A stretch of DNA of 64,000 bases from Monocercomonoides exilis PA203. Its lineage: Eukaryota; Protista; Preaxostyla. The notes under the pieces were generated by a model, which saw nothing but the letters and a program-made list of their open reading frames with translations, was not told where the DNA came from and did no database searches. Every line of letters begins with the position of its first letter. Position 1 is the first letter of the stretch. Location of the stretch: positions 124,001 through 188,000 of the forward strand of contig LSRY02000024.1 of NCBI GenBank assembly GCA_001643675.2, in the 5' to 3' direction. The position numbers and the translations under genes are program-made. Positions 3,291 to 51,482 of the stretch are shown here, one piece after another.

Positions 3291-3530
3291 TTCCAATGAC
3301 CACTTGATGCACTGATATAAGTGTTACAAAATACATCATTCAATATTACGATTTTTTTCATTTCAACAAAATAGAAATAAACAACTGTTCCTGTGAAACG
3401 TGATGAAGATTTTGTCTTCACGTATATCAGTGTTGATTTTTCACAACAGTGGTATTTTTTATTTTTATTTATTTTATTTATTTAACTATTTTTTATTTTT
3501 TATTTTTATTTTTATTTTTTTTTCGAAATA

Positions 3531-3885: not shown

Positions 3886-4000
3886 TAATAATTGATAAAA
3901 ATTTTTTTATAAAAAAATAATGATTATAATGATGATAATAATGATAATTACCAAATTAAAAAATAATAAAATTTAAATTAAAAAAATAAATGAACAAATG

Positions 4001-4140
4001 CAGATTGTGCACAAAATATAGGACTGAATAGATTTCTCTATGACTACAAAAGATATAATTCTGATATATTTCCTCAAAAAACATATCTTTACAATACTAA
4101 CAAATTTTGTCTGTCAAACTTTCATTTTTGAGTCATTTGA
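4001..4140 (+). repeat. Degenerate partial copy of the 3531-3885 MITE arm
   Basis: CAGATTGTGCACAAAATATAGGAC...AATTCTGATATATTTCCTCAAAAAACATATCTT aligns with the left arm starting at 3531. Confidence 0.65.
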
Positions 4141-22224: not shown

Positions 22225-22708
22225 CTCTATCACTTAATCGATAAAAAGAAAATGAATAAATTATTTGTATTTATTAAGGGATAATTATTGAATTAATTTT
22301 CTAATTCTTACCAAAATTTTCACATTTGAAGTTATTTAATTCTTATTTAAAAATAGAAAAAGAAAAGATAAGAAAGTATTTCATGATAAACTTTCTGTTA
22401 AAAATTGAAATACCCAATTATTATTTCAAATGCAAATTTGATATAAGTAAAATATTTCATCCTTTTCTTTTTCAAAAAGATTAAACAAATGAGATGATTT
22501 GTTTACCAAAAAATTAATTAATTAACAAATAAAATATTTACAAAAAAGCAATCTTTTGATGAGGGGAAAAAGTTGATTTAAAATAATTCATCGAATTTTG
22601 AAGAATGATTGAAGGAAACAATTCACACGATAAAAATACATTAAAAATAAAAAATAATAAAAATAAAAAATGGAATAGAATTTATTTAGCTAACAAGAAT
22701 TGAAGAAT

Positions 22709-27739: not shown

Positions 27740-30700
27740 ACTTGCACTTTTTTATCTTTCTCTATCTCTGTCTTCCATCCTCTTCCTCGTCTTTTAAATA
27801 CATTTGGATGTCTTCCTCCTCAGATGCTCTGCTGTTGTCACCTTTCTCAACACCTGCATCACCACCCACTGCCACTTCTCCTTCACTCCTCATTAGCATC
27901 TGCTCACTCTTCCCTCTTCTCCTTCCTCGATAGGTCCCTCGCTGTGTTCTCCTCCCTCTTTTCCTCTCCAAAACATCCTTTCCACTTCAGCTCAATGCTC
28001 ATTTGTGCTTGCAAAGTTACCCTTCGCCTCTCCAGGATATCTGTCCATTCCCTCCACCTCACCTGCCCTGCTATTCGTGCTCTCCCCGCTTCCTCCCTCT
28101 TCCTCTCCCACGCCAACCTCTCCACCCTACGTCCTGCCTAGCCTCTGCTGGTTTTTCAATAATAGCATCAGCTTCTTCGTTGAGCATCTCATCACCACTA
28201 TTTATCCACTGAATGATTCAGCGTGTTATTTTCATCTTTCTGTTTTAAATAAGTCAACAAGCTTCTTCAGCATGATGTTCTCCTTCTTCACTACCATTTC
28301 TTTCGACCAGTTCAGAGGCGAACAACCGTGAACATATCGACAGCTACTTGTTCACCTGCAACTGATCAGCCCTTCCCGAATAACACCTTTGCCCACAACA
28401 ACATCATCTGCTATGATGCCTGTGAGCTTAACATTGCCTCGCTTTGACAAAGCGAGTGCGTACTTTCTGTCACTTCCAAGTGGCATCCCAACCACGGATA
28501 AGCTCTTCGAAGTATCACCTTTTTAATCCCTTCCCTGCTGTTTGTTGCTGTGCTTAAGGACACTCATGAAAAAGAAGCAGCAGACTGAATGATTCAGATA
28601 AATAACAATTGATTATTTCTCCGTTTTAGCGTTCTTTTACTGCTCGTTGAAGTCTTCTCTTCTAACTTCTCTCCTTTTCCATATTATCCTTTTTTCTTTT
28701 AAAATCTCTTCAATTTTTTCAAATCCAAATTCCATTCATAATATTCTGTTTTTAATAAATTTATCTTTCTCTTTATCTTCATTCTCTTCATTCACCAAAT
28801 AATTTTCTTTTCATTTTTTGAAGAAGATGATTTCTTCATAAATACTATTCTTTTTTTTTTCCGCTGTTATTCCTTATGAAGATGTAAAAAATGAAGAAAT
28901 ACGATAAGAAGAAGAAGATGATGATGATGACTACGATGATGAATCAGATGGTAGCTGTAACAAAAGCAGAGCAAGGAGGACAGTTGCAGGTGAAGATGAA
29001 AGAATATCCTTTAAAAAAAGAAAGAATTTTGAAAAAATAGACTTCGCGTCGTAGAATTATTAGGAACTGTTCCAGATGGCTGGGAGAAAAGAAAGAGAAG
29101 GAGATGTTCGTTGATAACTCTGAAGTGAAAGAGAATGAGTCGAAGGAAAAGGGAGGGAAACTGAAGATGGAGAATTTTTTTATGTGAATGACGGAGAAGA
29201 GGAAGAAGGAGAAGGAGATTGCGAAAATTGAGAGAGATGAAACTGAGAGGAGGTGATGCTTGTCTGAAGCTGATGTGGAAGAATTGCTGAGAATTAGTCT
29301 TTCTTTATCTGATAGGGAAGTTCTCCTCTTCTTCCGCTTGCTGTTCCTTATGCATTTATCGCATGCCAACAGAAGTTGTATTAGCTTCATCAGCAGCAGG
29401 ATTTGAAGATCCACTCAGGTCCAGTGCATCTGTTGTTATATTCGATGCCAATGAAGTTGACTGAGACTCAGATGTTTGCTGGACAGAAGCAAAAGCGGAA
29501 GGTGTGGCATGTGCGAATGCAGCACCAACAACCTCCAATCGCTGGATGAGAGAGGCAGAAATGAACATCGAAGGAGAAGAAGAAGGTTTCTGGACATGGT
29601 GTGTCTCGAATATGGCTGATATTTTGTGGAGCAAGTCCTTCTTCACCATCAGCCTGTGAGCAGCGGTTGCAACAGCAGTGAGTGCAGTGCGCGTGGCCAG
29701 CAGACAAAGCAGCAGGCGATTGGACTACGCGGCAGAATGTCCGAGGGGCTGCGTGGAGAATGAGATGATGGAAGGTGTTGTGCTGAAGGATAGCATGGAC
29801 CGAGAAATGGAAATAGAAGCGACGAAGGAGGTGAATAAAGAAGGGATGGAGAACACGGAAGATGAAGTGAAAGATACTGAAAGAATCTTTGAAAGCAGAG
29901 TGTAGACGATAGAAGTGAGTGGATGAGAAAGATGGAGATGACACACGTTGACAAGAGGAACCTATGAAAACTTGAGAGAAAAAGTCAGAATCGAATGCTG
30001 CTCCCCTTTCTGTGGATACTCAATGCACAGCGGAACAACCTGAAATGTCAGACTTGTCAGTTCGAGAAGAGTTTTTTTGATGGATGGGACGCATGCTATT
30101 CTCTGCGGAGAAACAAAAATTGCATTTTCGGAGGCAGACAGCAGAAGTTGTTGGTTTTTGAAAAAGACAGACGAAGCAAACAAAAGTGGGTCAAGCAGAA
30201 TATTCGCATTGATTGCATATAACTCTCTTTCCATTGCATTCAAAGAGAAATTATTTTCATCATTCTTTCTATTGATCTTGTTGTGCACATCAGACTCATT
30301 GCTGTAGATTCCTCTCACTTCGCAGAACAGCTCAGCTGTGCCTCTTGCCTCGTCCACTCCTTCCACAGCTGCCCTTCCTTCTCCTCTCCACACATTCATC
30401 TCCTTTCTCATGTTCTCCACCAGTTGTGCATCTCTCACAGTATCTTCTCCTCCCAAGCTGAACATCCTCGTTCCACACAACAGGCTCAGAAACGAGTTCG
30501 CATCATTTGCCAATACTTTCCCTGTTTCACCAGCATGCGAAGAAGGAATGGTTGTTTGCTTTGGAAGCTGAGGTGACCAAAACTGGTTGAAAAGATGGAA
30601 GAGTGCCTTTCCGAGAGAGTGAAGCAAATAAGCGCCTTCATCCTGCCCAATCTGTTCATCAACTTCACAAACAGCTTCTTCGGCCCTGTCTTTTGTTTGT

Positions 30701-33700
30701 TTTTCTCCCCAAACACAGAATTGTTCCCAAGGTCATCCACTCTTCCTCCTCCATCTTCTTTATTTGCATTGGCATGCCTGTCTGGCTAGACAAACTCGCT
30801 AATAAACAAGCCGTGGAAAACCTGTTTCTCGCAGCTGCTCTGAGATGTGCCTGCAATTCTCTGCCGAGTGTTGCTCTGATGGCAGACAAGGCAAGATGCC
30901 TTTTTGACACAGAAACAGCCACCAAGATGTGGCTGCTGTGTCTTCTGGCGGGTGCTGTCTGGCTTCTCTGCTGCCTTCTGAGCCAATTGAGTTCTCGTCT
31001 TCTTCTTTCTCTCCATTTTCCTTTGCAGACTTGGGTGAAGGAAAGGTGAACTGCAGATGGGTTGGACTGAGCTCTCCGCAGACGATGGTTAAGGTGTGTG
31101 AGAAAGTGACATGCGACTTCTTCTGATTGCTCTTTTGGGATGCCGATGAAAGCATCTTTCGCTGCTTGGGAGTGAAGCGCAGGGCAGGGCGTGAAGTTAA
31201 GTCTTCTTTTCTTTCTGTTGTCTTTTATGTTTCATCGGCATTTGATGTTTCAGCAGATCGTGTTATATCCAAACTGTCTTCATCACCGCTAACGTAACAA
31301 TCATCGCTATCGTCGTTGTCATCATCTTCACTGTCTTCTTCTGCTTCTTCAGTGTCTGCTGCACCTGCTCCGTTCACTCACTCTCTCCTCTCTTCATTCC
31401 GCTTCAAATAATACACGTTCTTCCCTTTCCCTCTCGGCCACATCTTTCTTTTTGGCGTCTTTGCCTTGATTTTCTCTTCCTGAACGAGATTTGAAGGCAG
31501 CAGAAGGAAGACTGGCTTGATTAGAGGAATAATACTTCCATGTGTCAGCTTCAGTATGTTCTTCTTCTTCTTCGTAAGTGCCTCCTTCTTCTGCCTCTCT
31601 TTCATCTCAGCTGCATTAAATGTTGCTTCAACTCAGCTGTTTTCTCTCATTTTTGCCGAGTTGCATGTGTTCGAGGTGTCATATTCAAAAACAGATCTGC
31701 TCTTTTCCAGTGTCTGCAGAATGGACCGTGTACTTGTCAAAAATATCTTTGCACTGAGAATCCTGTCTTACTCCATGTCTTCATCTTCTTCCTCCTCCTC
31801 ATCCTCATCAAAAACTTCCTCGTCATATTCATTTCCATCAATGTTTCTGTCACTTCTTCCACTTGTCTCACTCGTGTCAGACACAGAAGAGTCAAATGTG
31901 ATGCTGCCTTCTGCCACTCAAAGAAGCTCCAACTTTTTCGAAGGAAGCTCACTCAGGACAGCTTATGAACACATCATCGGACTTGTCTTTGATCGGAATG
32001 CTTTTCCTTTCACTTTCATTCTCGCTTATCCTCTCCGCTTTTCATCTTTTTGCCTGCAAAACTCCAATTCATCTGATAGAAGCTCATCAAACACAGAAAA
32101 AATTCTTCACTTCTCTTTCTCCTTTCTCCTTTTTTTTTTCATCTTCTTTCACTTTCTCTTTGTTTCCAAGCTTCCTCTAACTCTCCAATGTTGCAAAAGT
32201 TGACTCCAAACGCCTCGCATTCTGTACAGTCACATTTGCACTTGCTCCTCCTTTGCTCTTCTTACCCTGCTGACTTAACCCCATTGCAATCATCATTCGC
32301 TTCCTCCGCATCTTCGGTAGTCTTTCTCTTGAAATAGCTAGCGGTACTTGTTCCATCCCTACACGGAATAGCTTCTTCTTCTAGCTGCTATAATTATTAT
32401 TATTATTAATGTTATTTCCACTTCCTCCCATCTTGTTTGTCAGCCCCAGCTCTTCTGATTTAAATTCTGGTAGAGCTATCCTTGAGCCTGTGTGTGTCTT
32501 CATACGAACTGTCCGCTTGAAGGCAGCAAGCGCTTTTTTTTCTCCACTTCTTTTGAGTGCTCTTCCGAATGCAGTTGATGGGATGCTCAGCAGTGAAACA
32601 GAAGAAGAAGAAAATGATGATGAAGAGGGATTCTTGGCTTGAGCATTTGATATAGGGAAAGAGGCAGTTGGAAAGCCAGCACTTGACGATGCAGAGGTGG
32701 AAGAAGAAGCAGCAGAAGCAGAAGTTGTATTGTTCTGTAGCAAATTTGCAGCTTTGAGCAACTTCGATGTGCGTGTTGTTGTTCTCGCCCTGCGCGAAAG
32801 TTTGATTTGAGGCGAGAATTTATTCGGGGCGTGTGTTGAGGCAGCTGTTCTGACTGATTTTCCAGGCGATTCTGTTTTGTTTGCCACAGAAGAAGTGGAA
32901 GAAGTGGAAGAAGAAGAAGAAGACTGAAGATTGAGTGAATTTGAGCTTCCTTCTTCCTCTTTTGTGTAAGTTTGTTGTTCTTCACTGACTTTGTTTGAAT
33001 CACTCACTGTGTTGTTAACATCTTCATTGTCATTTACATTTTCATTTCCTTCTTTCTTCTTCTCATTCTCTTCTTCCTCTTCTTCTTTCTTCCCTTGCCT
33101 CTCTCGCTGCAAACAATGAATTCTCTTTCCCAATCGTCTTCTTCCCTCTTTTTGGCTTTCCCCTGTGTGGCTTTCGGAAGTCGAGGTCTAACATCTTCGG
33201 TGCATGCACTTGCCTTTTCCCTTCGACGATGTCTGAGGCAGACAGCTGATGGCGAAGGGGAGATGAGGGATGAGGGGGCAGAGGGGAACTGGGGGTGGAG
33301 GAAGGATAGGGTGAAGATGAGGGAGAAGAGGAAGGAGAAGGAGAAGGAGAAGGAGAGGAGGAGGAGGAGGAAGAGGAAGAAGATGGAATGCCCTTTCTTC
33401 TCTTTGAAGGAGAACGGGGAGAAGGCAATTGCTTTGATGGAATGGATGATGAAGTTGTAGGAGGAAAAGAAGTATTTGAAGCAGCAGAAGCAGCAGAAGA
33501 AGAAGTTATTGAAGATGACATCACAGTTGATGCTTCTGATGAAGGAGCAGAAGCATCTGATTTCATTTCTGTTGAATTTGTTGGTGTTATTTTTCCCTTG
33601 TCTCCGTCCTCACCGATCATGTCTTCTTCTCTTTTCACAACATCTCCTTTGCTTATCTCAATCATCTCTTTCTTCATCTGCTTCACTGTTTGAGACAGAA

Positions 33701-36140
33701 CACTCGGCGCTTCATTCAACTGAGCCATTCCCATTCCACTTCCACTTCCACTTCCACCACCACTTCTCTCTCTCTCTCTCTCTCTTTCTCTTTCTCTTTC
33801 TTTCTCTCTCTCTTTCTCCATTTTCACCTCATCATTAGCACTTCTCAGCAAGTTGTTGATGTTCATCTTTTGTGTCTGTGTCTGTGGCTGTGTCTGTGTG
33901 TGAGTGAGAGGGCTAAGTGGAGGATGTGCTTGATGCTTGCTGGAGCGCCTGGAGTGTGAGGGAACAATGGAAAGACGAGAATTCAAAGAAGACTTGCCCA
34001 AAAGACGAGAGGCGGTGGAAGAAAGAGAGGAGAAATGAGAAGAAGAAGAAGTTAAAGAAGAGGAAGATAAACGAGAACGAAAAGAAACAGAAGAAGTTGA
34101 AGAAGAAGCAGAAGAAGATGATGAACCAGGAGGAGGCATCAGCTGAGGGTGAGGAATGTTCCTCTGCTTCATTCCGTAGTAATAATTGGTCGATGGATGT
34201 GAAAGAGGCACAAGTGCTGTTGAATTCTCATGAGAAGAAGAAGATGATGATGAAGAGGAAGAAGAGGAAGCAGAAGAGGAGGAGGAGGAGGAAGAAGAAG
34301 AAGAACGTAAGGATTTCGGAATGACCTGCATATTTCTGAGTGCGCCTTTTGGAGCTGACTTCTCTTTGTCCTTCACTCGCTGCTGTTCAGCCACGTAATT
34401 CGCTCTCTGCTTTTCGAAATCTCTCAGCTCTGCCTCAAACGCAGCTGATATGCCGTCCAATTCACGATGGAGCTCAGGAATGAAGAGAGTGTTGATGTAA
34501 TGGGCAACGAAACGGGGCTGGAGGAAAAGAGGGAGGGAAGAGAAATGGAAAAAGGAGGAGGAGGAAGAAGAGGAAGAAGAAGAAGATGATGATGATGATG
34601 AATGATGTTGGTGATTTATTTGATTGGAATGTTCAGATGAAGTGGAAGATGATGTGACAGACGGAAGAAGAGGAGAAGAAGCAAGAGATGCTGTTGGAAT
34701 TCCAAAAGAAGAGGAAGAAGAGGAAGAGGAAGAAGGAGAGGAAGGAAAAGAGGAAGTTGAAGGAGAAATGGTAGAAGGTACAGAAGGAGTGAACGAAGGA
34801 GTGAAAGAGACAGAACATGAAGATGAGAGCATTGGGAGAGAAGAAGAAATAGAAGCAGAAGCAGAATAAACAGCTGAATGCACAGAGAGAAGCATGTTTC
34901 CTTCTTTCTTCACAGGCGACGAAGGCGGAGTGAAGATTGAGTACAGCTGCTCTTCGTATTCCAACGGCGCTGTGATGTGCTCTTTGCAGAAGCCGGCTCG
35001 TCTGTCAGAGGCAGCAAGAGATCTTGTTCGGATGCTGCTTGAAGAAGGAGAGGAGAGAGAAGAGAGAGGAGAGAGAGAAGAAAAGGAGGAAAGGGATGAA
35101 AGAGAAGGAGAAGAAGAATTAAGAGATAAAAGAGGAACTTGTGCAGACAGTGTTAGTTGAGATGGATGAGATGAGTGGGGAAGATGAGGAAGATATGTTG
35201 AATGGGAAGAGGAAAGAGGAAGAGAAACAGAGGGAGACAGAGAAGGAGATAAAGAAGCAGCATAACTGCCATTCTCACTCATATTCTCATTCACATTGAA
35301 ACTTCCATTGCCATTGTCATTGACACTTCCACTTTCATTCACACTTGCTGTGTCAATTGCATCTGCTGTTGCATTCCCAACAGAAGATTGTCTTTCCTCT
35401 TCCACCTCCATCTGCCCATTACCCTCATTTGATGTCTCATTTGAAGCAGACTCATCAGAAGGTGGAAGCTCAAATCTGACAGTTGGAGTAAAACTGTTCA
35501 TCTGCTGCTGCTGCTGTTGCTGTTGACTCATCTGCTGGTTCATCCTCATTTGCTGCTGCTGTTGTTGAAGTAGCTCTTTCTCCAGTTGCTCATTCTGAAG
35601 AGTGCGAAGATGGCGCAACACACGGCTCGACAGCAGGTGAAGGTTCGAATCCTTCTTGAGGCGCTTGATCTTCTTGGCAGAACTTAACTTCTGGAAGGAG
35701 GTGGAGTTGGACAAGGGAGAAAGAGAAGAAGGTGGAAGAGAAGAAGAAGATGATGATGAAGATGACGACGACGAAGAAGAAGAGGAGGAGGAAGAAGATG
35801 ATGATAAAGAAGAGAAAGGAGAAGGTGAAATGGATGGTGATGGAGCAGATGAAGTGTGTGTTGAAAGAGGCGAGCGAGGAAGATTGGCTGTGCGCAGACG
35901 AGGATGAATACGAGAGTCTGCTGTTTTGTTCTTTGAGAGCTGAAATGAGTCTGGTCTGAGTGTTGGAGACAGCAAAGGAGGAGGAGAAGGAGGAGAAGCT
36001 GAAACTGAGGAAGAAGGAGAAGCAGCAGAAGCAGCAGAAGCAGCAGAAGCAGCAGAAGCAGAAGAAGCAGAAAAAGAGGAGGAAAATAAAGACGAAAATT
36101 ATGATAACGAAGAGGGAGATAAGGAAGATAATTTAGTGGA
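27740..36140 (-). pseudogene. Degraded low-complexity gene(s), including the 970-aa Ser/Gln-rich ORF 35975-33063
   Basis: Coding-like composition throughout. There is a frame switch near 33130 into ORF 33133-32381 and many in-frame stops downstream. No domain recognised. Confidence 0.45.
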
Positions 36141-36280
36141 TGTGTTATTTGGAAAAGCGGCTTATGATTAATATGAGGAAGAAAACGATGAAGAGGAGGA
36201 ATGTGAAATGGAACAATCTTTCGATAAATGGGGAGAAGTTTGAGATGATGATGAAAGCATTGAAGTCGTGCGACTGAACT

Positions 36281-36800
36281 TCATTCAAGCAAAAAAATGA
36301 AGCAATGTTCGCACATTCCTCTGATGTTGAAAACATACCACCGAAAAGGGAATAGGCGAGAATGGGAAGACGAATGAGATGAATGGAAGGACGAGAGGGG
36401 AAAGGAAAAAGATTTTTGAGAAAAAGCATTAGCAGCAGCAGCAGAAGATGATGATGATGAAAAAGAAAAAGAAGAAGAAGAAGATGGTTGAGGAATACTA
36501 CTGGATGCAATGGTGGTGGCAGTTGTGCCATTTCCGATGATTTTTGTGTCAACCGTTCTGAAAGTGAGTATTTGAAGAGGAACAAATGTTGAGGTGAGGA
36601 GAGTGAGGGAGGCGTCTTGGAGGAGGGAAATGAAGCCAGCGAGGGCAAACTCGATGGCGGCACATGGGGTCTTTTGGGGTCTTCCACAGACATCAGCATC
36701 GGTTCCATTGTTGGCAGCAATTTTGTTCTGGGCAATGAGGGGGAGCCAGCCATTGAAAGTTTCATTGTCAGCAGTTACTGCATTCCACACTCTTTTAGTT
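36281..36800 (-). pseudogene. Isolated fragment of the surface-protein family
   Basis: NGTDADVCGRPQKTPCAAIEFAL...TKIIGNGTTATTI resembles the GxDxxxCGxxxxPCxTI module of the two giant proteins. Confidence 0.6.
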
Positions 36801-37325
36801 TGAGTTGTTGAACCACAATTTTCAAATGGTTTTGCTCCTGTTTCTTTTCTCTTTGCTATGATTTCATTCAGAAAATATATTTCCTTCTGATTCTTCTGAA
36901 CTCTATCGTCATGTTCTCTTTCTTCATCTTCATCCAACAAAAATTAAACTTCATTTCAAGTGAACTGTTAATTCTCCAAAAATCTTTTTTAATTAATAAA
37001 GAAATTCATTTCTTCATTATTTAGTTAATTTGCTTTCATCTTTTTTTCTCCATCTTCAATGCACGTTGTGTCACGATAAATAGCTATCAATATACGATAA
37101 ACATGAAAAATAAAATCCAAAAGTCAGATGAATAAATTTATAAATAAATTTTAAAAATCAATGAAGATAAGTTCTGAGTATATTCAAAGAAATAATAAGT
37201 CAAAATAAAGAATCAAAAAAAAGATAGATCGAATTAATAATAATGGAGAAAAAACCAATTAACCATGATGAAATAAAAATTAAAGTCAAAGAAATACTCA
37301 TTAAAATAGAATCACTTACAGACAT

Positions 37326-37956
37326 ATTTCTGAAAGATGAATTATTATTCTTTCATTTTCACTGATATTCCATCTCGGGCTGACAAATTATTTATGAAAA
37401 AAATCGTATTGGTTGCTATTATTGCAGCTTTTTTAATAGAAATAAAATGAGAATATGGTTCAAATACATTAATTGTTTTGCGCTTTTCTCACAAAAATAT
37501 CCACATGAAAATTAATGCATATTTATTTTTTGACACAATAAAATACAAAAAATTATAAATACGTTCCATTTTCCTGAAAATATGTGAAATTAAAAATCTC
37601 GATCACAAAAGTGGTCACTAATTTTTCTTCGGATTTTGCAACAAACAGACATTAAAAGATGTGGGGAAGCTGTCTGCGTGGAAATCTGAGAAAAAATTAG
37701 TGACCACTTTTGTGATCGCCAGTCATTTCAATTTTCAGTTTTATAATAGTTCCGATCGTTCAACGGATCAAATCTGATGAGAACCTTAATAAAAGTGTTT
37801 TTCTAAATGACTGGCGATCACAAAAGTGGTCACTAATTTTTTCTCAGATTTCCACGCAGACAGCTTCCCCACATCTTTTAATGTCTGTTTGTTGCAAAAT
37901 CCGAAGAAAAATTAGTGACCACTTTTGTGATCGAGATTTTTAATTTCACATATTTT
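37326..37956. repeat. Left terminal repeat: 251-bp outer arm plus 380-bp palindromic block (152 + 76 spacer + 152)
   Basis: 37326-37576 is the reverse complement of 43762-44012. 37577-37728 is the reverse complement of 37805-37956. Confidence 0.95.
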
Positions 37957-38715
37957 CAGAAAATATTAGCTTTTTGTTGTCTTATATGATGATTTTGATT
38001 GATTTGTTATGTTTTCGTATTTTAAAGGAAATTATTTATTGTTGATATCTTTATTATTATTTGTCATATGCCAAAATACACTTTTTCGTGAACATATGGA
38101 AAAACAAACAATGTGAAGTGAGAGAAAAACGTTAAAAAATATCAATCGTTCACCAATCAAAATGACATAAAATAATAAAAAGTTCTTCATGATTTCGATC
38201 ATAAATAAAATTGAAAACTGTCAGAAAATTTCGAATCAGATTCATCAACTTTCAATAAAACATAATTCAATCACATAATCATTAAACAATCACCAAATAT
38301 CAACTAAATATCAACAATTTTGAACAATAAAAAATATAAGAAGAAATAGTACAATTTCAACAAATTCGTGGTATCAAAGACAATTCCAAACAAAAAAGAA
38401 TACGTATATAAAAAGTTCAAAAACTAACTTGTCTATTTTCCACCTGTTTTTTATCCACTCACCCCTTTCTGATATTTCTCTCTCTTTGACTCAAAAAGAT
38501 CAAATCCAACAAAGAAAAAAGACAGACACAATGATAAAACAACATTTCACACTCTCAACAACTCTCCCTTCCAAAAACCTCACTCAAAGATCAATGAATT
38601 CCTTCACAACTCTATCTATTAATGAATCTCGATATATACATATATAAGCGGGACAATAACAAAGAAATAAATAGGGACATATCAGGGACAATAACCAAAA
38701 GAAAACAATCGGATT

Positions 38716-38853
38716 CTAACTATTGTGCACCTGGGAGGCTGTTCGTCGTATCCAGGTCCGGATAAAGCAGCCCGAAGGCTGCAATATCAAATACGAACAG
38801 TCATGTCCAGCACCCTTCCGATAGAGTGCCAGCTAAGCATGCACAATAACCAG
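38716..38853 (-). ncRNA. Putative structured RNA element directly 3' of the transposase stop codon
   Basis: GC-rich island. On the minus strand it forms a 14-bp closing stem with 3 G-U pairs, a GCAGCC-UUCG-GGCUGC hairpin, and stems CUGUUCGU/ACGAACAG, GGCACUCU/AGGGUGCU and UAUCC/GGAUA. Confidence 0.6.
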
Positions 38854-38857
38854 TTTC

Positions 38858-41800
38858 TTAAAAGGGGACACCAAAAGAACAATTTTGAGATTCATTAATA
38901 GAAGAAGAATCAAGAAGAAGCTCAAATCTCCTTGAAAGAAGATCTTGAGAAGATTGAGAAAGAAGAGAAGAGTCAGATGATGTGATATCAGAGTGAAATG
39001 ACTTTCTTGATCTTTGGACTTTTTCTTTCATTGTCGAAGATTCGAGGGCAACCAGAGAGCGTTGAGGAAGATATCCAACAGCTGAAGCACAGACAAATGA
39101 GCCCTTGCGCTCAAAATACAAGTAGTCTTTCATGTGGGGAACTGACAGTGATGGCCATGAAATTTGTTGAGATGGAACATATTCTTCAAAATATCTCTCA
39201 TGCACAGAGTCATTGACAGATGTTGACGATGGGGAGTTGTTTGATGATGATGATGAGAAAATGTTTGATTGTAAAGATGAAGAAGCTGATGTCGAAGTGT
39301 TCATATTGTTTTCGAAGAAGTTGATCAAGTCATGAAGTGTGGTGATGTGTTCAGTCGAAAGATTGTTGTCGATTGCATTCACTAACGCACCAAATTCACT
39401 ATCACAGATATTTTTTCCATGGTGCTCAGCGAAGAAGTTGAGTTGAGTATTTTTCTTTTTGAGAAGTTTGGATTGTTTTGAGAGGATGAAGTGAAGAAGG
39501 AAGCGATTTCGGTTGTGTGGACCAGAATCGCAGAAGAACTTAAAAGTGTGAGTGTCTGAGAAGAAGTGTCTTTTGATCACAGATTCCAGACACTCAATAA
39601 TAAATCTGTGATTATTTGAAAGGCAGTCGGAGAAGAAGTTGAAAGTTCTTTTTATTTGTTGATTATTTATTTTTTGAAGAGAGATGATTGTGAATTGAGA
39701 AACTTGTTGATAGTTGAAGAATTCTTGTTGAAGTTGATTTTTTCTGATGGGGAGTTTCCATTTCTCTTTGAAGTCAAAGACGAAGACTGCTTCTCCCTCT
39801 TTCAGATTGTCGACAGTTGATTGATAGTGTTTTCGTTGCATTTCAGCAACAAGTCGGTGTTGACGAAGAAGTTTGAGTGTATGAAGCTCAGCAGAAGAAA
39901 GTCCATTTTTGTTTGGAGATGACTTTAATTTGTTCTCAAGATAGTTCAACTTCTCACACATTCCACAAAGGTCAGTTCGTCTTTTCGCTTTAGAGAAGTT
40001 TGTTGTTAGCTTGTAGAAATGGGAAAGAGAAACTTTAATATTTGTTTCTTCTGAAAACTCTTTCCATAATTTCGTCTTGGGCTTGAAGATTAATCTCTTT
40101 TCATTGGGAGAAAAGATGCCCGTTTTCTTTCTTCTTTCTTTCAGTGCTTCCAATCCATATGAAGATGTGATTGATGAAGAAAGTTGTGAAATGGAAGTTG
40201 TTCGGGGAGGGAGTGTGATGAATGGAGACGATGATGATGATGTTGTTGTTGTTGATGTGTTATTTAAGGTGTTGTTATTGGATGTTTCTGAAGAAGAGGA
40301 GGAACCACCAAATTGAATAGTTGAAAACGTTGGTTTTGTTTTTTCTTTGGTATAGAATGAGAGCGATGGATTGTAACCTTGTGCGTAAAGATCCTTCCAT
40401 GCCTTTGTCCAATTTTCGATGTTCAGTTCTGTCACATCAGCATCGTTGCAAATATTCCATGAGACATCGTTTCCTCTATTTCTTTTGATGACAGCGATAT
40501 AATGGCCATTTCTTTGATCCAACTGTTTATGAAGAATTTGCCCAACAAAATGATAAAAATACACTTCTTTATAGTTCTTTTGGAGATGTTGAAAACTTTC
40601 TGTTGAAAACCCTTTGATAAATGTTCGCTTGTTAACACGATCAGTTTCAATCATAAGCGTTCTTGAAGGAGCAGAGCTAGCAGAATCAGTGCATTCGTGA
40701 CAGAGGGCAAGCACCTCTGGAAATGCAGCCATTTCCTCCCATCGAGCAGTACAGCATTTATCCTTACACACATCGCAAAAGACACTATTCTTTCCTTCCA
40801 AAATTTCTGTTGCAAAAAGTGAAGATAAACCTTTGTGAGGTGATGATGCATTGATGACAATATTGCAACAAGATTCATTAAAATGATTTGAAACTTTTTG
40901 ACATTTTTGACATTTGAAATGTGTAATGAGCACTGGATTGAAGGTGTCCTTTTCAATTATCTTATCATTTTGAAGAAGTTGATGAAGATTTTCAAATGCC
41001 TCTATCACATTCTGTTGTTGCCGACTTCCGTATCTGCAGAATGATTCCCATTTGTTGATCAGTGATGGGGCCCACGAACGCACTAATGTTCCATCTTTTG
41101 CAAGTTGTTGACAAACACTCAAAACACGAGAAGATAAATTGTTTTTTGATGTTGTGTTTGTTATAATTGATTGTTTTTGTGAAGTTATTGAAGAGAAGCA
41201 TTGAAGGAGAGAGGCAAGATAGCAAGTGTTTCCAAGATTTTCCAATCCTTTCTTTGTTTTTGATGAAGCAATTGAAGCGGTTTTGACACTTGAAGAAATT
41301 GATGGAGAAGGAGAACAAGTTGAAGAATAAATATCCATTGTGTTTCTGTTGTTCATGATACGCGAAGAATTTTCATGATTTGAACAAATTCTATTGTCTT
41401 CATGGGTTTTGTGTTGAGATGGAGAAGTGATGCTGTCTTTTACAAATGAAGACAGAAGATCTTGAAATGCATGTGGAGGAATTAGAGTGGGAGAAGAAAT
41501 ATATTCCAGAAATTGCTCGCTCGCTCTCACATTTTCATTTCTATTGGATGAAGAAGAATTGCCAATAATTATCGTATTTTTCGATATGTTTTGTTGCTTT
41601 TTGGATAAAGAGGAAGAGGAAGAGGAAGAGGAGGAGGTAGAGGAGGAGGAAGAGGAGGAAGAGGAAGAGGAAGAGGAAGAGGAAGAGGAAGAGGAAGAGG
41701 AAGAGGAAGAGGAAGAGGAAGAGGAAGAGGAAGAGGAAGAGGAAGAGGAGGAAGAGGAGGAAGAGGAAGAGGAAGAGGAAGAGGAAGAGGAAGAGGAAGA

Positions 41801-43095
41801 GGAAGAGGAGGAGGTAGAGGAGGAGGAAGAGGAGGAAGAGGAAGAGGAAGAGGAAGAGGAAGAGGAAGAGGAAGAGGAAGAGGAAGAGGAAGAGGAAGAG
41901 GAAGAGGAAGAGGAAGAGGAAGAGGAGGAAGAGGAAGAGGAAGAGGAAGAGGAAGAGGAGGAAGAGGAAGAGGAAGAGGAAGAGGAAGAGGAAGAGGAAG
42001 AGGAAGAGGAAGAGGAGGAGGAGGAGGAGGAAGAAGAGGAAGAGGAAGAGGAAGAGGAAGAGGAGGAGGAGGAGGAAGAAGAAGAGGAAGAGGAAGAAGA
42101 AGAAGATGGAGGAGGAGGAGGAGGAGAAGTTGATGATTTTTTTGTTTTGAAGAATTTGTGAATTGGGATGGGCGAAGGAGAAGAATAACGTTTATGACAT
42201 GATTTGTTTGTTTTTCTTTTTGTTATTCCCCTTTCTCTCCTTATTGGAGTGCTGATTGGTGTATCAACAGGTTGAGAAAATGAAGAATTTGTTGATGAAG
42301 AATTATTTTCTGAAACGACATTTGATTTTTTATTTTGTTTTGATGAAAAAGAAGAAGAAGAAGATTGTTTTTTGATTGAAGAAGAATTTTCCGTTATTAT
42401 TTCATCTTCCCAGGCATCTTCGTCAATAAATCTGGCGTAATCTGGCTCAGCTCGCTGCTTTTTCTTTGCAGATTGAAGCGAAGTTGAGGCTTCAGTGGAA
42501 TGGGCTAACATCCAGTTGTTGCCCTTTTCCCAGTCCTGTTCATTTAAACCTATAACAAACAGAGATAATTATTCAAAAAAAATTCAAATAAAAACAAACC
42601 ACTTTTGCAAGACGGAAAGTGAGGTTTTTGAGGCGGAATGATAAATCCTTGGTTCTTTTTGAGCGTTTGCTTCGCGTAAATGTATTTGCCTTCTGTGACA
42701 TCATATCCATAGTCTTGTAAATCTGATAATGATGTGTTTCGAGACAGCGCCTGTAGCATTGTTGTCTGAGTGTGCAATGGAGCGTTTTTGTACACAACAG
42801 ACATGTCTTCGAGCAGCTTTATATGATATTCTGTTAGAAAAAAAAATAATAAACAAAAAAATAAGAAAATGACAAGGATGACAGTTCAGAAAATTTTCAA
42901 TATAAAAATTCAAAAAATCAAAATCAAACCGTTCAATGACTTCAGCAAATTGTTAATAACTGAAGATGATTGCCTGTAAGTGTAAAACAAATAGACAAGC
43001 AATGAATCAACGTCATCTCCACCGATGCGTTCAATTTCATTCCATAAAACTTTGCATTTTGAATTAAGAGTTGATTGAGGTTTCGAAAAAGACAT
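38858..43095 (-). CDS. USP (peptidase C19)-transposase fusion, ~1362 aa; exons 43095-42930, 42830-42600, 42549-38858
   Basis: Both GT-AG introns join the frames without stops (4089 nt). USP: GLENLGNTCYLASLLQ, QQNVIEAF, CxxC pairs, NGHYIA, WNICND. Transposase: TDLCGMC, FDFKEKW, FCDSGPHNRN, NFFAEHHGKNICDSEFG. Confidence 0.9.
41608..42107. repeat. (GAGGAA)n coding repeat, about 165 Ser on the minus strand
   Basis: About 500 bp of GAG/GAA triplets in frame within exon 3. Confidence 0.95.
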
Positions 43096-43381: not shown

Positions 43382-44012
43382 AAAATATGTGAAATTAAAA
43401 ATCTCGATCACAAAAGTGGTCACTAATTTTTCTTCGGATTTTGCAACAAACAGACATTAAAAGATGTGGGGAAGCTGTCTGCGTGGAAATCTGAGAAAAA
43501 ATTAGTGACCACTTTTGTGATCGCCAGTCATTTCAATTTTCAGTTTTATAATAGTTCCGATCGTTCAACGGATCAAATCTGATGAGAACCTTAATAAAAG
43601 TGTTTTTCTAAATGACTGGCGATCACAAAAGTGGTCACTAATTTTTTCTCAGATTTCCACGCAGACAGCTTCCCCACATCTTTTAATGTCTGTTTGTTGC
43701 AAAATCCGAAGAAAAATTAGTGACCACTTTTGTGATCGAGATTTTTAATTTCACATATTTTCAGGAAAATGGAACGTATTTATAATTTTTTGTATTTTAT
43801 TGTGTCAAAAAATAAATATGCATTAATTTTCATGTGGATATTTTTGTGAGAAAAGCGCAAAACAATTAATGTATTTGAACCATATTCTCATTTTATTTCT
43901 ATTAAAAAAGCTGCAATAATAGCAACCAATACGATTTTTTTCATAAATAATTTGTCAGCCCGAGATGGAATATCAGTGAAAATGAAAGAATAATAATTCA
44001 TCTTTCAGAAAT
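43382..44012. repeat. Right terminal repeat: 380-bp palindromic block plus 251-bp outer arm
   Basis: 43382-43761 matches 37577-37956 as a direct repeat, while 43762-44012 is inverted relative to 37326-37576. Confidence 0.95.
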
Positions 44013-44904
44013 GCATCTGAAACTGCATTTTTTTCATCGAATTTTTATATGGAGATTCATTGTGTACAGTGACAGAACAACAATTTTGTTCGCATTTCAA
44101 TATATAGAACATTTGATGATTATAACAGACGTCAAATTTCAAATAGAATTTGAGTTTTCATGCTCTTATTCTTTTTAGTCATTTGAAATTTAACTATTTC
44201 AATCATGCACCAGTTTGAAGCTTCAACATTTCATTCATCCACAACGCTGATGCGATATAATATTCTTCTTTTGCATCACGAGGATTTCACTTTTTCCTGT
44301 TTGCTGAGATTTTCAAATATGACTTATTCCGATTGCACCACAACAATGCATTCTACTCCTGCTGAAAATGTCTTTAAATCCATTTTTTGCTCGTATAATT
44401 CTTCTTCTTCCTCTTCTTTCATATTCGTTTCCTTCGTCTTTATCGTAGTCGTCTTCTCTTCCTTTCAGTCTTCTTTTTCTCCACAAAATTCAGAATGTGT
44501 TCATTTTGTTAATTTGTTTCATCGTCTTTCTCTTCCTCTTTGCCTTCCTATTCTTCGTCTCTCATCTTCATAAACAATCACCTAATATGCTTGCTCTCTC
44601 AGCACAACGATTAAGCAACCTTTTCACATCATTCCGTTCGTCCGCTGTTTTCCGCAATCTTTATCTTCTCCTTCTCTTTCTTCTTCTTTTCGATATAATC
44701 AAAATTACCAACAAACTTCTTAAAGAAAATGATAAAAAGTCTACTTTCACTTCTTCTTCTTCGTCTTCGTCTTCGTCTTCCTATTCTTCTTCTTCTTCTT
44801 CTGTCTTCTTCTTCTTCTTCCTCTTCCAATTTCTGGTTTTTTGATGAAAACAAACCTTCCTCCAATGCCTTCACGAAAAGAAAATGATGGAAAAGGGAAT
44901 AACA

Positions 44905-44960
44905 GAAAGGAAGGAAGGAAGGAAGGAAGGAAGGAAGGAAGAAGAAGAAGAAGAAGAAGA
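44905..44960. repeat. (GAAG)n(GAA)n compound microsatellite
   Basis: Read directly. Confidence 0.85.
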
Positions 44961-47455
44961 GAATGCAAAGCATGTTGCAGCTCCGGAGAATTTCCACAAC
45001 GAACTAACTCGAATGTTTGAGAAGACATCTACTAAGGAGAAAGACAAGCGGAAGATGAATGAAAAGATTCCCAGAGAATGAGCTGACTGTAGAGGCGAAG
45101 CGGGAGATTTAGGAAAAATGGATGATGGCTTTCTTTCAAGCAGAAGAGAGAGAGACAAAGGAGGTGAAGGAATATAAAATGCTTTGATTTCTGGTGGATT
45201 GTTATCTTCATAGGACAGCACGGGCAGAATGGGACCAAGCTTGTTAGCGATGGAAGTTGTAAAAAAAAAGCAGCAAAAGCAGATGAAACATATAGATCTT
45301 CCTCCTGGTCCAGTCACAAAACATATTTAGCTGAAGTTGGTTCAATTTTAGAGAACAAAAAATACGAAATTGACAATATCTGCTAATAACAATTGCTGCT
45401 GAAATAGAAGAAGAAAGATAGGCAAAGGGTCGATAATCCGGGAAGAGAAGGAGAGGAAGGTGCGCTGACAGTGCTTGTGGCGCAAAGGAGGTTTGATGGG
45501 AGTGACGGAGCAGACGCAGAAATGGAGGAGATTAACGTCATCCAATACTCGCAACATGCACAGAATACTTTGTGTGCTTTTCGCGACAGCTTTCTGTGCG
45601 CTCCATCACCGAGGCCTTCGTCTGACCCTCAGTTCGCGATAGATATATTTCGGAGGAAGCAGTAGAAGGAGTGGGCTCCTGAGATTCCTCAGGTTAACAT
45701 CGAATGCTCACTGTTTGTTTCGTGTGTAGTGTAGGATGTGAAAATGAATCTGTTCTATGAACAGAATGAGAACTCGATTTGGAATGGCCGGTCGTCGGTA
45801 ACGGATGAGAAATTTGAGGCGAATGACCCGCTCATCTTATTCACAGGCACCATTGCGAAGATCTCTTGAAAGTGCCGCTTTCTGCGCTGCATGGACAGGC
45901 ACAATGGAAGAGAGTATGGAAGCTTCAGTGGAATCTACCAGTCTGAGTTGGATTTTTTGTTGTCTGATTCGAGCAGGGAAGAAACACAGGCGTAGAAGTT
46001 TATCACATAGCCAAAGAGGATTGCGAATGAAAAGCAGACTCAGTTCACGTCACAGAACAAGGAAACAGTCGAAGAGGCGAAGTTGGACGCGCCCAGTGCA
46101 GCAAGCTTTATGAGACTTGTAAATGAAAATGTCTATCTTTGGGGGAAATAAGCTATTAACATACAAGATTGACTAGATTTTCAAAGAAGAAAGATTTAAG
46201 GAAAGAGATGAGAGCCAAAGGCTGCGGATGTTCTGAGCTCGACGAGAGAAAAAAACAGAATTTCAGACGGATCAATGTTGGTGATGGAGAAGATTGGAAT
46301 AAATGTTTGTGTTTATTTTCTTTTTATTTAACAAAGAAATATTATCAATTTATAATTAATTGCTTATTTTTATTTTTATTTCATATTCTTTTAAAAATTT
46401 TGAACTATTTGCTTTTATTTTTCTCTTTTTCTTGTGAACAGACATTCTTGACAGGGATTTGTTAGTTGATCGCATTGGTCATTTTGTGAGTGTGTGCATT
46501 GACAACCTGCATCGAAATGCCTGTCTGAACTACCTCTGCATTAAAATCATAGAGACGCCAAATCTTTCCACTCTGTTGTGACCTACACAAACAATCTCCA
46601 TAAAACTCTGTGCGAGAAACAATGAAGGCACAATTCCTCATTTTATAAAATTTTCTATATTATTCTATTATTTGTTATTTTTTTACTTTTATTCCATTTC
46701 TTGTTTACAAATTAATTTTATTCAATATTTTATCTCAATTAATTCAATCTAATAATATTCATACATATGAATCATCCCTCATTTAATCACTTTTTTTAAT
46801 CAGTTTCGATCGCGAAGCATGGACTGCGGATCTCTTCCAGGATAGCTTCTCAGAGTTTCTGCTGCCATTGGAAACAGAACAGAAAAAAAAGACTGAACAA
46901 TGTGCCATCTCCACCGCACCATTTGCTTCAACAGATATTTCGGTGACGCCGATGACTGCCTCCTTTCCACACACGCTGGCTTTCTCTTTTCAGAGTCCAC
47001 TTTAGATATCTTCTCTTCATCATCAATACCTTCTTCTTTTTCTTCCTTTTCTTTTGCGTCGTTCATTTCTAAGTCCCCCTCCATTGTCTCGTCCTCTGAT
47101 GATGCTGCTGTTAGCATCAGGTGGGTATTGGAAGTTGCATCATTCTCATCTCTTCCTCCTCATTCTCTTATTCTAATCCTTCTTCTTCTCTCTCTTCCTT
47201 CTCGACCTCCTTCCACTTTCAATGCTTTCTGCAAATTTCTTCTTTTGCTGGATAAGGAGCTCTCCAAAAGAGAAGAAGAAGATGAAGGAGGAGAAATTGA
47301 GAGAGAAAGAAAGTGACAAAGATTAGAAATAGCATGTTTCAACTTTAATAATTTCTTATCGTACTATACACACAAAAACTATTCTGTTGCTTCAACTACA
47401 TCTTCATCTTCACCTTCAGCTTCCTTGTCTTCTTTGTCTTTATCTACGCAACATT

Positions 47456-48100
47456 CTATTGCACCTTCTTCAGAAGACCCATCGCGTTGTGTGTCCTCTT
47501 GTAGGGCATCTTTGATGTCCAACAAAACATTGCTTTGATGCCAAGATGACCATCCACGCATTCATTGTCAGCTACATGCCCGTTGAGAATTATAAACAAA
47601 TCGACATCCCAATCGCCAAATGCTTCTGTTCTGTCATGTCCAACGACTGAGTTGCCTTTCTGAGTGATGTTTCCCATGAAGGCGAACAAGGGCTCTTTCA
47701 CAGAAGCGACAAGGGATTCACACACAAAATACATTTTTCTTCCAACACTCGCCTTGTTGGCTGAAAACACGATATTGGTGATGGAAAAGGAGGATTCTGA
47801 CACTTGCGAATCATCCTTGTACTCGATCATGAGAGCACCGCCTCTTCCTCCAGAACTTGTATCCTCGTTCACAGAACAGGTGGAGAAGATGGTGTTCCTC
47901 ACAGAAAACGAGTTGGCAGGGGCAGATGATGCGAATGAGATGTATTCGCCATTGGTGGGAATCTGTTGGCGTTGTGGAGCTGAGTCGATGTTGGCGATTG
48001 TGCAGTTGGTGAGGGAGAGGGAGAGGGCAGGGGAGTTGGCAATTAATGAAGAAATGAAAGAAGAGAGAAGAAGAAACGAAGGATGAATGGAATGAATTCC
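47456..48100 (-). pseudogene. Fragment of the surface-protein family
   Basis: GGRGGALMIE...IVFSANKASVGRKMYFVC...DVDLF matches the GGG..FxxNxAxxGxxxF module of the giant proteins. The frame is broken. Confidence 0.7.
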
Positions 48101-49749
48101 ATTGTATATAAAGGAGCGATAGAGGGCGTATGTTGAATGAGAATTTCAAAGAAACAATAATGGAAAATATTGGACGAAGAACAAAGAGGATGGAGAGAGA
48201 AGTCAATAAGTGATAAGATCAGGAGAAGAGAGAGAAATAGAAGAATTTGAATCAACTGTTGTTCTTAGCAATATTTACTTTTCCACAATTCCATCCAGTT
48301 ACTGAATCACTGGACTGGAACGGATAATTTGTTATGTTGAAACATTATTAATAATAGATAACGAACAGTTCTCTTTTTTTGAATATCAAAAAAAATAATA
48401 AAAAATAAAAAATAAAAAATTTATACATATTTTTGACTTTTCCAATATCTTTTCATTTTTATTTTCCAATTATTAGTACTGTTTGGAAAATTGAGAAACT
48501 TGACTTTTTCATTTTGAAGTTTTATCTATTCGTTTTTTGAAATTTTAAAAAAACTTGATCTGAAATTTTCCATTTTCTCTCTTAACATAAAAGAGGTGTG
48601 GTTTTTGCATATGATAATAAAACAAATATTTATAACAGAAATAAAAGTTAAATACTTGCAAAAAATCTATTTTTCTCTATGATCAATAAATACCGTTATA
48701 AATTTTATTTTTTCAATTTTTGATCTTTTTTTATGATATCAAAAAAAAACACCCATATGAAGAAAATTTTTTTTTAAACAGTAAAAAGCAATGAAAAAAT
48801 ATCAAAAGTTATTTTGTTTTTTAAATAATATTGAATTAATTTTTGTGATATGAAGCACTTAAATATTAATATTTTTCATTATGAATTGTGTTTGGTGATG
48901 TTTCTGCCACAACAATCAAAAAATTGAAATATGAAATAATTACGTGATAAAAAAAAAAGCAGTTGATTGAACAGTGGAAAAACTTTTTGCGATAAAAAAA
49001 TATAATATTAACAGCTTTATCTATTCAAATCCTGATCATGTCACAACGCATAAATTTATAATATCTATGACACATGTTTGCAGATATGAAAATCCGATTG
49101 ATTTTGAAATCTGAGAAAGTTTAAGATAGTTCTGAGTGATGCAATGTTTTCATGATTTGCGCAAAATAGCTTGAAAGCCTGTATTTTCCCCCATATATTA
49201 TTTTTTTATTTTCACGTTCAAAATTGTGTAGAATCTCATCAGGTATAGCACAACTTTTTGTGTCTATGTTGGACTGAGATTATACGCAATGTTGCATTGC
49301 GCATCAACATAAAAAAAAGTTATTAATTGATTAATTAATATTGTGTGAAGTTTTCAATTTCATAAAAATTCTTCACAACCACACTTGTTTCAATTGCGAA
49401 TTTAATATTTGTAATAAATATTCATAATTAAGACTTATTCAAACAATATTTTTTAAAATCAAAAATTTGCATTTGAAAATCAAATAAGTTATTATTCATA
49501 GAAAAAAAAAACGCTAAATAATGAAAAATTTGATTATATGTGTGATTATTTTTTATATCATAACTTTTTTCGGAATGAAGATTTTTATTTTAAGTTTTAT
49601 TTCTTTGGAAAGGAATTAATCATTTGAATGAAAAAAATCATTAAAAAATGTTTAAAAAACGACAATGTTTGAGATTTTGATCATTACGAATTTATTTTTG
49701 AAAGGATGTCCAACTTTTCAGAGTTCATTTGTCAAAATTCAAAGTGAAG

Positions 49750-50376
49750 GGTGGTCCTTCATATTTTGCACAAAGAATAACAAATGTGAAAATAAAAAAT
49801 GAATGATCAAAAATTTTTTGATATGGGTAATTCTTTTTGAAAAGTCGCAAATGTTTTATTTTCAAATATATCAAAAATTTCACATTTTGCTCAAATATCT
49901 GCTTTCACTCACGAATCTCCTCAAGAATGTGTGAAATAGCATAATCCTTTAATAGATTCCATATTAGTGAAGTTTGATGTTCGCGGACAAAAATTTGAGC
50001 AAAATATGAAAATTTTGATTTCTTTGAAAATAAAACATGGGTGATTATTTTTGAAATCATAAATTTTTTCGGGGGGTTGATATTTGACAGGTTGTTGTCA
50101 TTGAATAGAGGTTCTACATATAAATGATAAATTCCATCAAAACCATTTCAAATACAAATGTTAAAGCTGAAATAATGATGAAATTGTCTTTAAATAGTAT
50201 CTTCACTATTCACAATTCTTTTGTTAATATTCATGTGATATTTTCTAATAGAAATTTTTGAATGAAATAGTATGATTTCAAAAAAAATCACCCACATTTA
50301 TTACTTTTCATAAAGAATAACCCACATAAATTTTAAAACCATATCAAAATTTTATTATAAAATTTCAAGGACCACC
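49750..50376. mobile_element. Degenerate MITE-like element with nested inverted repeats
   Basis: GGTGGTCCTT...AAGGACCACC ends, an inner inverted pair at ~49851-49897/49994-50038, and the motif TGGGTGATTWTTTTGAAATCATA in both orientations. Confidence 0.45.
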
Positions 50377-51482
50377 TTATTAATTATTGTACCGAAATTT
50401 TTGACTATAAAGTTTCGAATGAGAAAATATTCACCCAATTCACATGTCTCGCAAATTAAATCTTAAAATAATATTGAGACCTCATTTTAGACTCAACGCA
50501 ATTAAATTTTGTTGATGATTTTATTCAATGAGCAATATTCACCGTTTCGACTATTCCATCTGCATCTATCGTTCAAAACACGCTGTTGTCAAAAAATCGA
50601 AAACTCAAAAATATCAACAAAAATGAAGATTTTTGATAACTGCAGATCATCCGAATTGGATGTGTACTTTTCTCCAATAAAACACATCACTACAACAGTG
50701 CTTTTCTGTTTAAAACAAAATCCATCCATTGATATTAATATCCTTTTAAAAACCCAAACATCCAATCGAGAAAAGAAAAAAGAAACACAAAACTTGAAAA
50801 TATCACAAACGAAAATAACTGTGAGTCACATATTGGTGATTGTTTTTATTTTTTTATTCAAATGATTAAATTTGTCAAAATACTTATTGACAAAATTTCA
50901 CAGAACAAAGAATATATAATTCTTGATCAAACATATTTCATAAATACAGAAAACTCAAACTTATCTAAAAAACCAACCTTGTTATCATCACTTTTATTCA
51001 ACATGTCAGTGAACATTATTTTTCCTTATCAAATAAAGGAAATGCTTCAGAGAATGATTGTTAACAATTGTTATTTGTGAAAAACCAATTTTTTTCATTG
51101 AGAAAAAAAATGGAATTAAATAAAAAATATTCAAATAACATGATACGTTGTATATTCAGCAGCAACATATGAATAAGTTTGAAATGAAATAACACTTTAT
51201 ATTTTGAATTGGATAAAATGAACAAAATCATTTTTTATCGAATATGATTAATTAAATCTCAAATGAGTGAATATTCATATTTAAACAAACAGCTAATTTG
51301 AATATTTTTATCACTTTTTTGATATCTTTATTTGTCAAAAAAGACAACTTTCTTTTTGTAAGATTACATAATTATTTTTTCTATAAGACCCATTATTTTT
51401 TTTGAATTGTCATAAACAAAAGAATTTAATTTTTCTTAACAAAATAAAATTCGTTTCTTTCAGTTTTTTTGGAAACATACAG

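Follow-up and report, generated by a model that had tools for sequence, protein, structure and literature searches.

The question raised by a 64,000-nucleotide stretch of the Monocercomonoides exilis PA203 genome (contig LSRY02000024.1, positions 124,001 to 188,000 of the forward strand; hereafter the window) is whether a gene on its minus strand encodes a DNA transposase and an intact ubiquitin-specific protease (USP, peptidase family C19) in one polypeptide and, if so, what kind of mobile element carries it. The locus is probably a cargo-carrying Sola2 cut-and-paste transposon of ~21 kb, in which a compact USP is inserted between the N-terminal region and the DDD core of the transposase. The parts of this account established by sequence comprise (i) the Sola2 core, (ii) the fold and residues of the USP, (iii) its insertion position, (iv) selection, (v) the GGGTG ends with their 4-bp duplications, (vi) the independent sites, (vii) inversion, and (viii) homogenisation of the arms of an inner repeat.

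Domain organization of the transposase

The coding region comprises three exons (Table 1) separated by two short GT-AG introns, 42929-42831 (99 nt) and 42599-42550 (50 nt), whose counterparts are present in three other copies of the gene and in the annotated MONOS_11334; the exon lengths add up to a predicted spliced coding sequence of 1362 amino acids. On the minus strand, the open reading frame (ORF) is free of stops between 42568 and 38858, and the single stop-free exon 3 holds both the USP and the DDD parts, as the sequence-only reading of this DNA had proposed. Protein searches were run exon by exon, and residue numbers are counted from the ATG at 42511. An exact look-up of the unspliced ORF returned no matching gene record; the closest proteins to the core are M. 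exilis gene models, with 88-95% identity over the core.

The Pfam UCH model recognizes the USP at 55.4 and 60.7 bits, against a gathering cut-off of 23.9, the 55-bit match spanning residues 422-699 of the ORF. The catalytic residues Cys430, His670 and Asn689/Asp690 (codons at 41224, 40504 and 40447/40444, respectively) are accompanied by two CxxC pairs, and these pairs, the Cys box at 41248 and the TDLCxxC motif at 39976 all lie where they had been reported. The predicted structure, based on a shallow alignment, is of moderate confidence (predicted local distance difference test, pLDDT, 66; predicted template modelling score, pTM, 0.71), and a structure search with this model returned USPs for all of the top 50 matches (TM 0.51-0.63), with USP1, USP35 and USP30 matched at E~1e-13. 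Profile and structure searches agree on a UCH/C19 domain, and the score above cut-off, the USP fold of the model and the presence of the catalytic residues uphold the claim that the domain is intact. A search for the donor of the USP found none, the best matches outside the family displaying 22-26% identity. By language-model features, the nearest Atlas clusters are compact USPs of Nucleocytoviricota (0.95-0.96), which are similar in their minimal size of ~300 amino acids, without a close sequence relationship; this likeness to giant-virus USPs is a lead only as to origin.

The transposase core contains the catalytic triad Asp913, Asp995 and Asp1037 (codons 39775-39773, 39529-39527 and 39403-39401). 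It has 654 relatives at E values up to 0.001, and the three Asp residues and the HGK motif are invariant in 90 aligned core relatives. No Pfam model matches the core; its predicted structure (pLDDT 91) nevertheless displays an RNase H-like DDD transposase fold, with integrases, Mos1 and Metnase (Z 10.3-11.4) together with Hermes and IstA among the top structural matches. The core is 31% identical over 254 amino acids (E 5e-23) to P0114, the PPL_04538 protein of Heterostelium, in which the motifs published for the Sola2_PPa-1 transposase are found. Because of this homology, the family is assigned to Sola2, which sharpens the Sola-type DDD assignment made earlier. The dictyostelid Sola2 elements DFa-2 and PPa-1/4/5 (Bao and Jurka 2013, PMC3627910) display the same order of transposase motifs, with the core of PPa-1 being 31% identical.

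The position of the USP was located with a profile built from 65 relatives, all outside M. exilis, over the stretch that precedes their core. This profile matches exon 2 (profile positions 53-111, E 2.5e-5) and, from about position 155, a second segment immediately ahead of the CxxC motif, and gives the same two-part match in both copies of a second M. exilis lineage of the gene (lineage 2, described below). Since the matches flank the USP on both sides, ~800 residues, comprising linkers and USP, replace ~45, so that the USP sits within the transposase, with the N-terminal exons on one side and the DDD core on the other. The proposed fusion thus stands as to the shared polypeptide, but an internal insertion takes the place of a terminal fusion. 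A pairwise BLAST comparison of exon 2 with PPa-1 detected nothing, the relation being detected by the profile only. L045, the nearest relative outside M. exilis, displays the N-terminal motif, a short linker and the core, and no USP.

The same gene is present at five other M. exilis loci (L001, L002, L004, L005 and L006) with 80-94% nucleotide identity, forming lineage 1 together with the window. In lineage 2, which comprises L003 and one copy in L004, the parts follow one another in the same order, at 43% identity for the core and 25% for the USP; its two copies are broken. Lineages 1 and 2 and L045 form one clade (Shimodaira-Hasegawa-like approximate likelihood ratio test, SH-aLRT, 98; inner order unresolved) in a quick tree built without Repbase references for Sola2, Sola1, Sola3 or Zator. 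The Cys box, His box, Asn/Asp pair and finger zinc ribbon are complete in the window, L001, L002 and L004, the His box is altered in L005, and the catalytic triad is kept in lineage 2 too. Pairwise ratios of nonsynonymous to synonymous substitution rates (dN/dS) are 0.20-0.41 for the USP, where every bootstrap interval stays below 1; for the core they are 0.05-0.15. The pairs are not independent. Both the USP and the core are under purifying selection. In all four DNA runs, which come from one sample and hold 67-78% of the sampled words, the contigs covering the core reach a summed depth many times greater than those over the flanks, suggesting tens of copies in the genome, although depth is no copy number. 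Among the best 150 of the 654 core relatives, no USP was found in the other ~145, nor in 34 metagenome loci or L045, many of these being short contigs on which absence is not proven. L004 itself carries a Tc1-type gene (1-319) and the lineage-2 USP-Sola2 copy (2300-6365) beside its lineage-1 copy.

Probable element ends and cargo

Terminal inverted repeats (TIRs) of Sola2 elements begin with 5'-GRG. The published Sola2 elements display short TIRs and 4-bp AT-rich (AWWT) target-site duplications (PMC3627910). In the window, the probable ends are the TIRs at 27117 and 48754, each comprising GGGTG, a run of T and a GA(T/A)ATCAT core; they delimit 21,638 bp with ATAT on both sides, and the end motif occurs four times in the window against 0.07 expected. 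A second complete element of 20,850 bp, also with ATAT on both sides, occupies 554-21403 of L009. The end at 48754 recurs at L001:1022, L005:17103, L006:356 and L009:21403 with unrelated DNA beyond, the five flanks being ATAT, ATAT, AAAT, ATTT and ATAT, respectively, and the blocks shared between loci stop abruptly at the GGGTG end. The architecture predicted to recur at unrelated sites was accordingly found, with the gene at five other loci and five unrelated flanks at one element end. In five loci, the same end subtype is found within 5.7-9.1 kb of the gene, and gene and GGGTG end occur together in five of the six lineage-1 loci; in lineage 2, a search found no short TIR pair.

A separate miniature inverted-repeat transposable element (MITE) of the window displays the same GGGTG ends, which account for the other two of the four occurrences of the motif. 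As it is flanked by directly repeated ACAT, which is non-palindromic and not strictly AWWT, these ends appear to generate a true 4-bp duplication. A palindromic repeat of ~220 bp (49821-50037) adjoins the MITE, and its homologue also adjoins the end of the L009 element, possibly reflecting a target preference. Elsewhere, the far end of L008 is replaced by mariner-like sequence (L008 23700-23952), and L010 has, at 1975, a second end of this type that is eroded.

Between the ends, blocks of the left cargo are common with L008 (28.9-32.7 kb, 84%) and L004 (32.4-36.8 kb, 93-96%), and a piece resembling a beta-helix gene lies near 36.3-36.9 kb. In the right cargo, the fragment 47585-48037 resembles the host beta-helix genes of the window, so that a fragment of this gene family is carried inside the element. 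None of the 72 open frames inside the element has a Pfam hit. A Maverick/Polinton or hairpin-ended replicon was considered and rejected, given that no protein-primed polymerase or retroviral-like integrase was detected by Pfam in these frames, that the duplication is of 4 bp and not 5-6 bp, and that the palindromes are internal.

Table 1. Features of the candidate element and its surroundings, in positions of the window
Feature	Position	Strand	Description
Target-site duplication ATAT, left	27113-27116	.	
Left TIR (probable)	27117-27143	+	~27 bp, begins GGGTG; subterminal 500 bp 67% like the same L009 end
Cargo, left	27144-37325	.	Low-complexity host-like gene pieces; no Pfam hit
Inner inverted repeat, 3' arm	37326-37959	.	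~245-bp outer part and palindrome (155-bp arms, 76-nt loop 37729-37804)
Old inverted copy of the final 430 nt of the gene	38213-38635	.	~62%; present in all lineage-1 copies
Conserved folding non-coding element	38705-38856	-	Just past the stop codon; folds strongly, with z about -3.6 to -3.8 for either strand
Exon 3	38858-42549	-	No stop inside; acidic/Ser-rich linker, USP, linker, DDD core, C-terminal domain, in that order
Sola2 transposase core	39300-40144	-	CxxC-H motif and catalytic Asp triad
USP/C19 deubiquitinase domain	40337-41250	-	Cys, His, Asn/Asp intact
Poly-serine tract	41600-42130	-	~170 Ser; length differs from copy to copy
Exon 2	42600-42830	-	Matches N-terminal region of USP-free Sola2 transposases
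Exon 1	42930-43095	-	Start ATG at 43095
Inner inverted repeat, 5' arm	43382-44012	.	Palindrome loop in direct, not inverted, orientation relative to the 3' arm
Cargo, right	44013-48726	.	Includes blocks on the opposite side of the gene in L010
Right TIR (probable)	48727-48754	-	Ends CACCC
Target-site duplication ATAT, right	48755-48758	.	
Separate MITE	50039-50293	.	255 bp, same GGGTG ends; ACAT on both sides

Inner repeats and rival explanations

Several observations weigh against a Sola2 element with these ends and an inserted, working USP. ATAT is self-reverse-complementary and, in the two full copies, could belong to the repeat itself; a true duplication is favoured because of the ACAT-flanked MITE and the AAAT and ATTT flanks. 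That the transposase acts on the GGGTG ends is inferred from their co-occurrence and from the Sola2-type duplications, and L004 lacks a 5' GGGTG end within 10 kb, a lineage-2 copy occupying that place. Four of the six lineage-1 copies are broken (L002, L004, L005 and L006 contain stops or a frameshift; the window and L001 are intact), and synonymous divergence (dS) between copies is 0.1-1.4. In view of the broken copies, the missing end of L004 and this divergence, the element is no more than a candidate for current activity. A single transcript is a prediction from the sequence, as no RNA run among those searched holds the stretch and no contig spans the gene; the NCBI model of one copy, MONOS_11334, splices out 1083 nt including the Cys-box half of the USP.

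The chief contest concerns the two ~630-bp inner repeats, identical over 403 bp, which the sequence-only reading had taken as the element ends. A mobile unit of 6.7 kb bounded by these repeats, and nested in Pack-type GGGTG elements moved by another transposase, would accommodate the near-perfect long inverted repeats found near the gene in four copies, the absent end of L004 and the Sola TIRs of up to 1.1 kb that have been reported (PMC10741241). Such a unit is improbable, however, since no target duplication is found at the repeat edges 37326/44012, and the repeats of the window bear no relation to those of L001 (180 bp, 69%), L002 (1.4 kb) or L006 (1.4 kb) although the genes of the four are 80-88% identical. 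In L005, where one related arm is present, homology continues past the edge of the window's repeat, and the recurrence of one GGGTG end subtype at a similar distance from the gene in five loci also argues against it. Furthermore, the arms change together: of the differences between window and L004 arms, 8/8 recur in each arm of a locus, so that none is confined to one arm, while the flanks common to both loci are 97-99% identical. The 630-bp repeats were rejected as termini on these grounds, and appear to lie inside the ~21-kb element. Because the arms are homogenised in place, their near-identity does not date the insertion, and its use as proof of a young insertion was likewise rejected; near-identical long inverted repeats need not indicate recent insertion. 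The repeats contain nested palindromes, at 37574-37959 and 43382-43761, in which each 155-bp arm holds a further imperfect hairpin of ~119 bp; the 76-nt palindrome loop is flipped in the window relative to L004.

The orientation of the gene differs between copies: in the window, L006 and L008 it faces away from the very end that it faces in L009 and L010. In addition, blocks located downstream in L005 are found on the upstream side, in inverted orientation, in the window and L006. The transposase cassette has thus been inverted between copies, most simply by recombination between the inner repeats.

A second rival, rated lower still, regards the USP as a captured passenger, spliced out or idle, with the working transposase devoid of it. 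The MONOS_11334 model, a USP whose rate of evolution is three to four times that of the core, and the free capture of host DNA by these elements would all be in keeping with it, whereas the catalytic residues retained across two lineages at 25% identity and the dN/dS values far below 1 would not. The intron on which it draws displays a GC donor in the window and L002, has lost its acceptor in L005 and lacks the GTTTG donor and pyrimidine tract of the real introns. In view of these poor and non-conserved splice signals, the USP-removing intron is probably a gene-finder artefact and was rejected as the likely true form of the gene.

It is very improbable that the copies represent a host gene family, domesticated and propagated by segmental duplication, or else a mis-assembled repeat: long flanking blocks in common, purifying selection and the window letters at 36997, 38404 and 39613 without support from any compared assembled contig would suit such readings (the last encodes Asn in the core where other copies have Asp; possibly consensus errors or private variants), but the sharp ends with duplications and unrelated flanks beyond already largely refute them, most copies are broken, core depth far exceeds flank depth in all four runs, and a mis-assembly is hard to reconcile with a fusion that recurs in two lineages and on no fewer than six contigs.

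Precedents, proposed mechanism and accompanying sequences

Ubiquitin/SUMO proteases of transposons have long been noted, including Ginger1 and Mutator transposases with OTU or Ulp1 and Helitrons with OTU or VTD deubiquitinases (PMC2836005, PMC9741609). These are likewise element-encoded isopeptidases, but belong to other protease classes and other transposon superfamilies, and the Ginger1 protease is C-terminal whereas the M. exilis USP is internal. Closer is XP_001314237.1 of Trichomonas vaginalis, named in Bao et al. 2010 (PMC2836005) as comprising transposase_11 and Peptidase C19 domains: also a metamonad protein with C19 on a DDE-type transposase polypeptide, it differs in containing pfam01609 and not Sola2, and is represented by a single mention. 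The claim that no C19 protease was known on a transposase of this kind accordingly narrows to Sola2: a literature search, with Repbase and Dfam outside its scope, found no USP on a Sola transposase, and the Sola2-USP combination is new as far as searched.

The dictyostelid Sola2 elements (PMC3627910) share short imperfect TIRs, 4-bp AT-rich duplications (ATAT, AAAT, ATTT) and passenger DNA, but comprise 10-15 kb with a separate Fanzor gene, whereas the M. exilis element displays an inserted USP, host-like cargo and an invertible cassette. Its length of ~21 kb exceeds the Sola sizes found in the literature. Pack-MULE-type elements are gene-capturing TIR elements with Mutator-like element (MULE) ends and a 9-bp duplication; they are likewise filled with shuffled host-like gene pieces, whereas the M. 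exilis element has Sola2 ends and a 4-bp duplication and keeps an autonomous gene. Cargo-laden Sola2 elements that copy and shuffle pieces of host genes are one candidate source of the unclassified repeats, which amount to 35% of the M. exilis assembly (PMC8767320).

Following established DDE chemistry, the transposase would bind the GGGTG ends and move the whole unit and the MITEs into AT-rich 4-mers. By analogy, the USP would be active, tethered on long serine-rich linkers, and strip ubiquitin in the vicinity of the transposase. If it is active, the leading candidate substrate, though short of probable, would be the transposase itself, which might thereby escape proteasomal turnover, a protection proposed for Helitron deubiquitinases (PMC9741609). 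With somewhat lower likelihood, the USP may instead act on chromatin or on repair factors where the element is excised or inserted, in line with the effect on repair proposed for transposon proteases (PMC2836005), and action on another ubiquitin-like modifier or in self-processing is the least likely of the three. The literature search found no test of either proposal for any Sola element. Recombination or gene conversion between the inner repeats would flip the cassette and keep the arms identical.

A Sola2-like transposase of another clade (P0014, from L007; Logan SRR25904989) displays an OTU-like domain upstream of the core, identified by its motif and by the nearest Atlas clusters being OTU (0.93), with no Pfam detection. 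It possibly reflects an independent capture of a deubiquitinase, and its location in the same region points to repeated selection for this activity. A broader proposal, held here as doubtful, is that Sola2 transposases of gut metamonads acquired deubiquitinases repeatedly at one internal position (a USP in the two lineages of Monocercomonoides, an OTU-like domain in a separate clade) and thereby actively oppose control by the host through ubiquitin. The elements that carry them would be gene shufflers of 21 kb with an invertible transposase cassette and a conserved post-stop regulatory RNA. The family offers a clean functional test, comprising transposases with and without the USP and a compact domain under selection. 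Sola2-like transposases of Streblomastix strix (P0015, partial) and Blattamonas nauphoetae (P0067) display no detectable USP.

The non-coding element that follows the stop codon is GC-rich, and its conservation across the copies of lineage 1 is ~97%. In lineage 2, a separate conserved folding element of ~95 nt occupies the same place (L003 ~10130-10225; L004 ~6200-6295), and the elements of both lineages end in a similar CAGCCTCCCAGG motif. Rfam returned only sub-threshold hairpin matches, and a search with a model of the RNA element found only its own six copies. The neighbouring inverted copy of the gene's end could form double-stranded RNA with the transcript.

Beyond the element, the window contains (i) a pogo/DDE_1-like transposase fragment at 1989-2756 (-), (ii) reverse transcriptase/RNase H and gag-like frames at 9072-11299 (-), by appearance a DIRS-like retroelement, and (iii) two very large genes at 13228-22233 (-) and 51402-59318 (+), which encode beta-helix, membrane-spanning and kinase-like regions and belong to an expanded M. 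exilis family.

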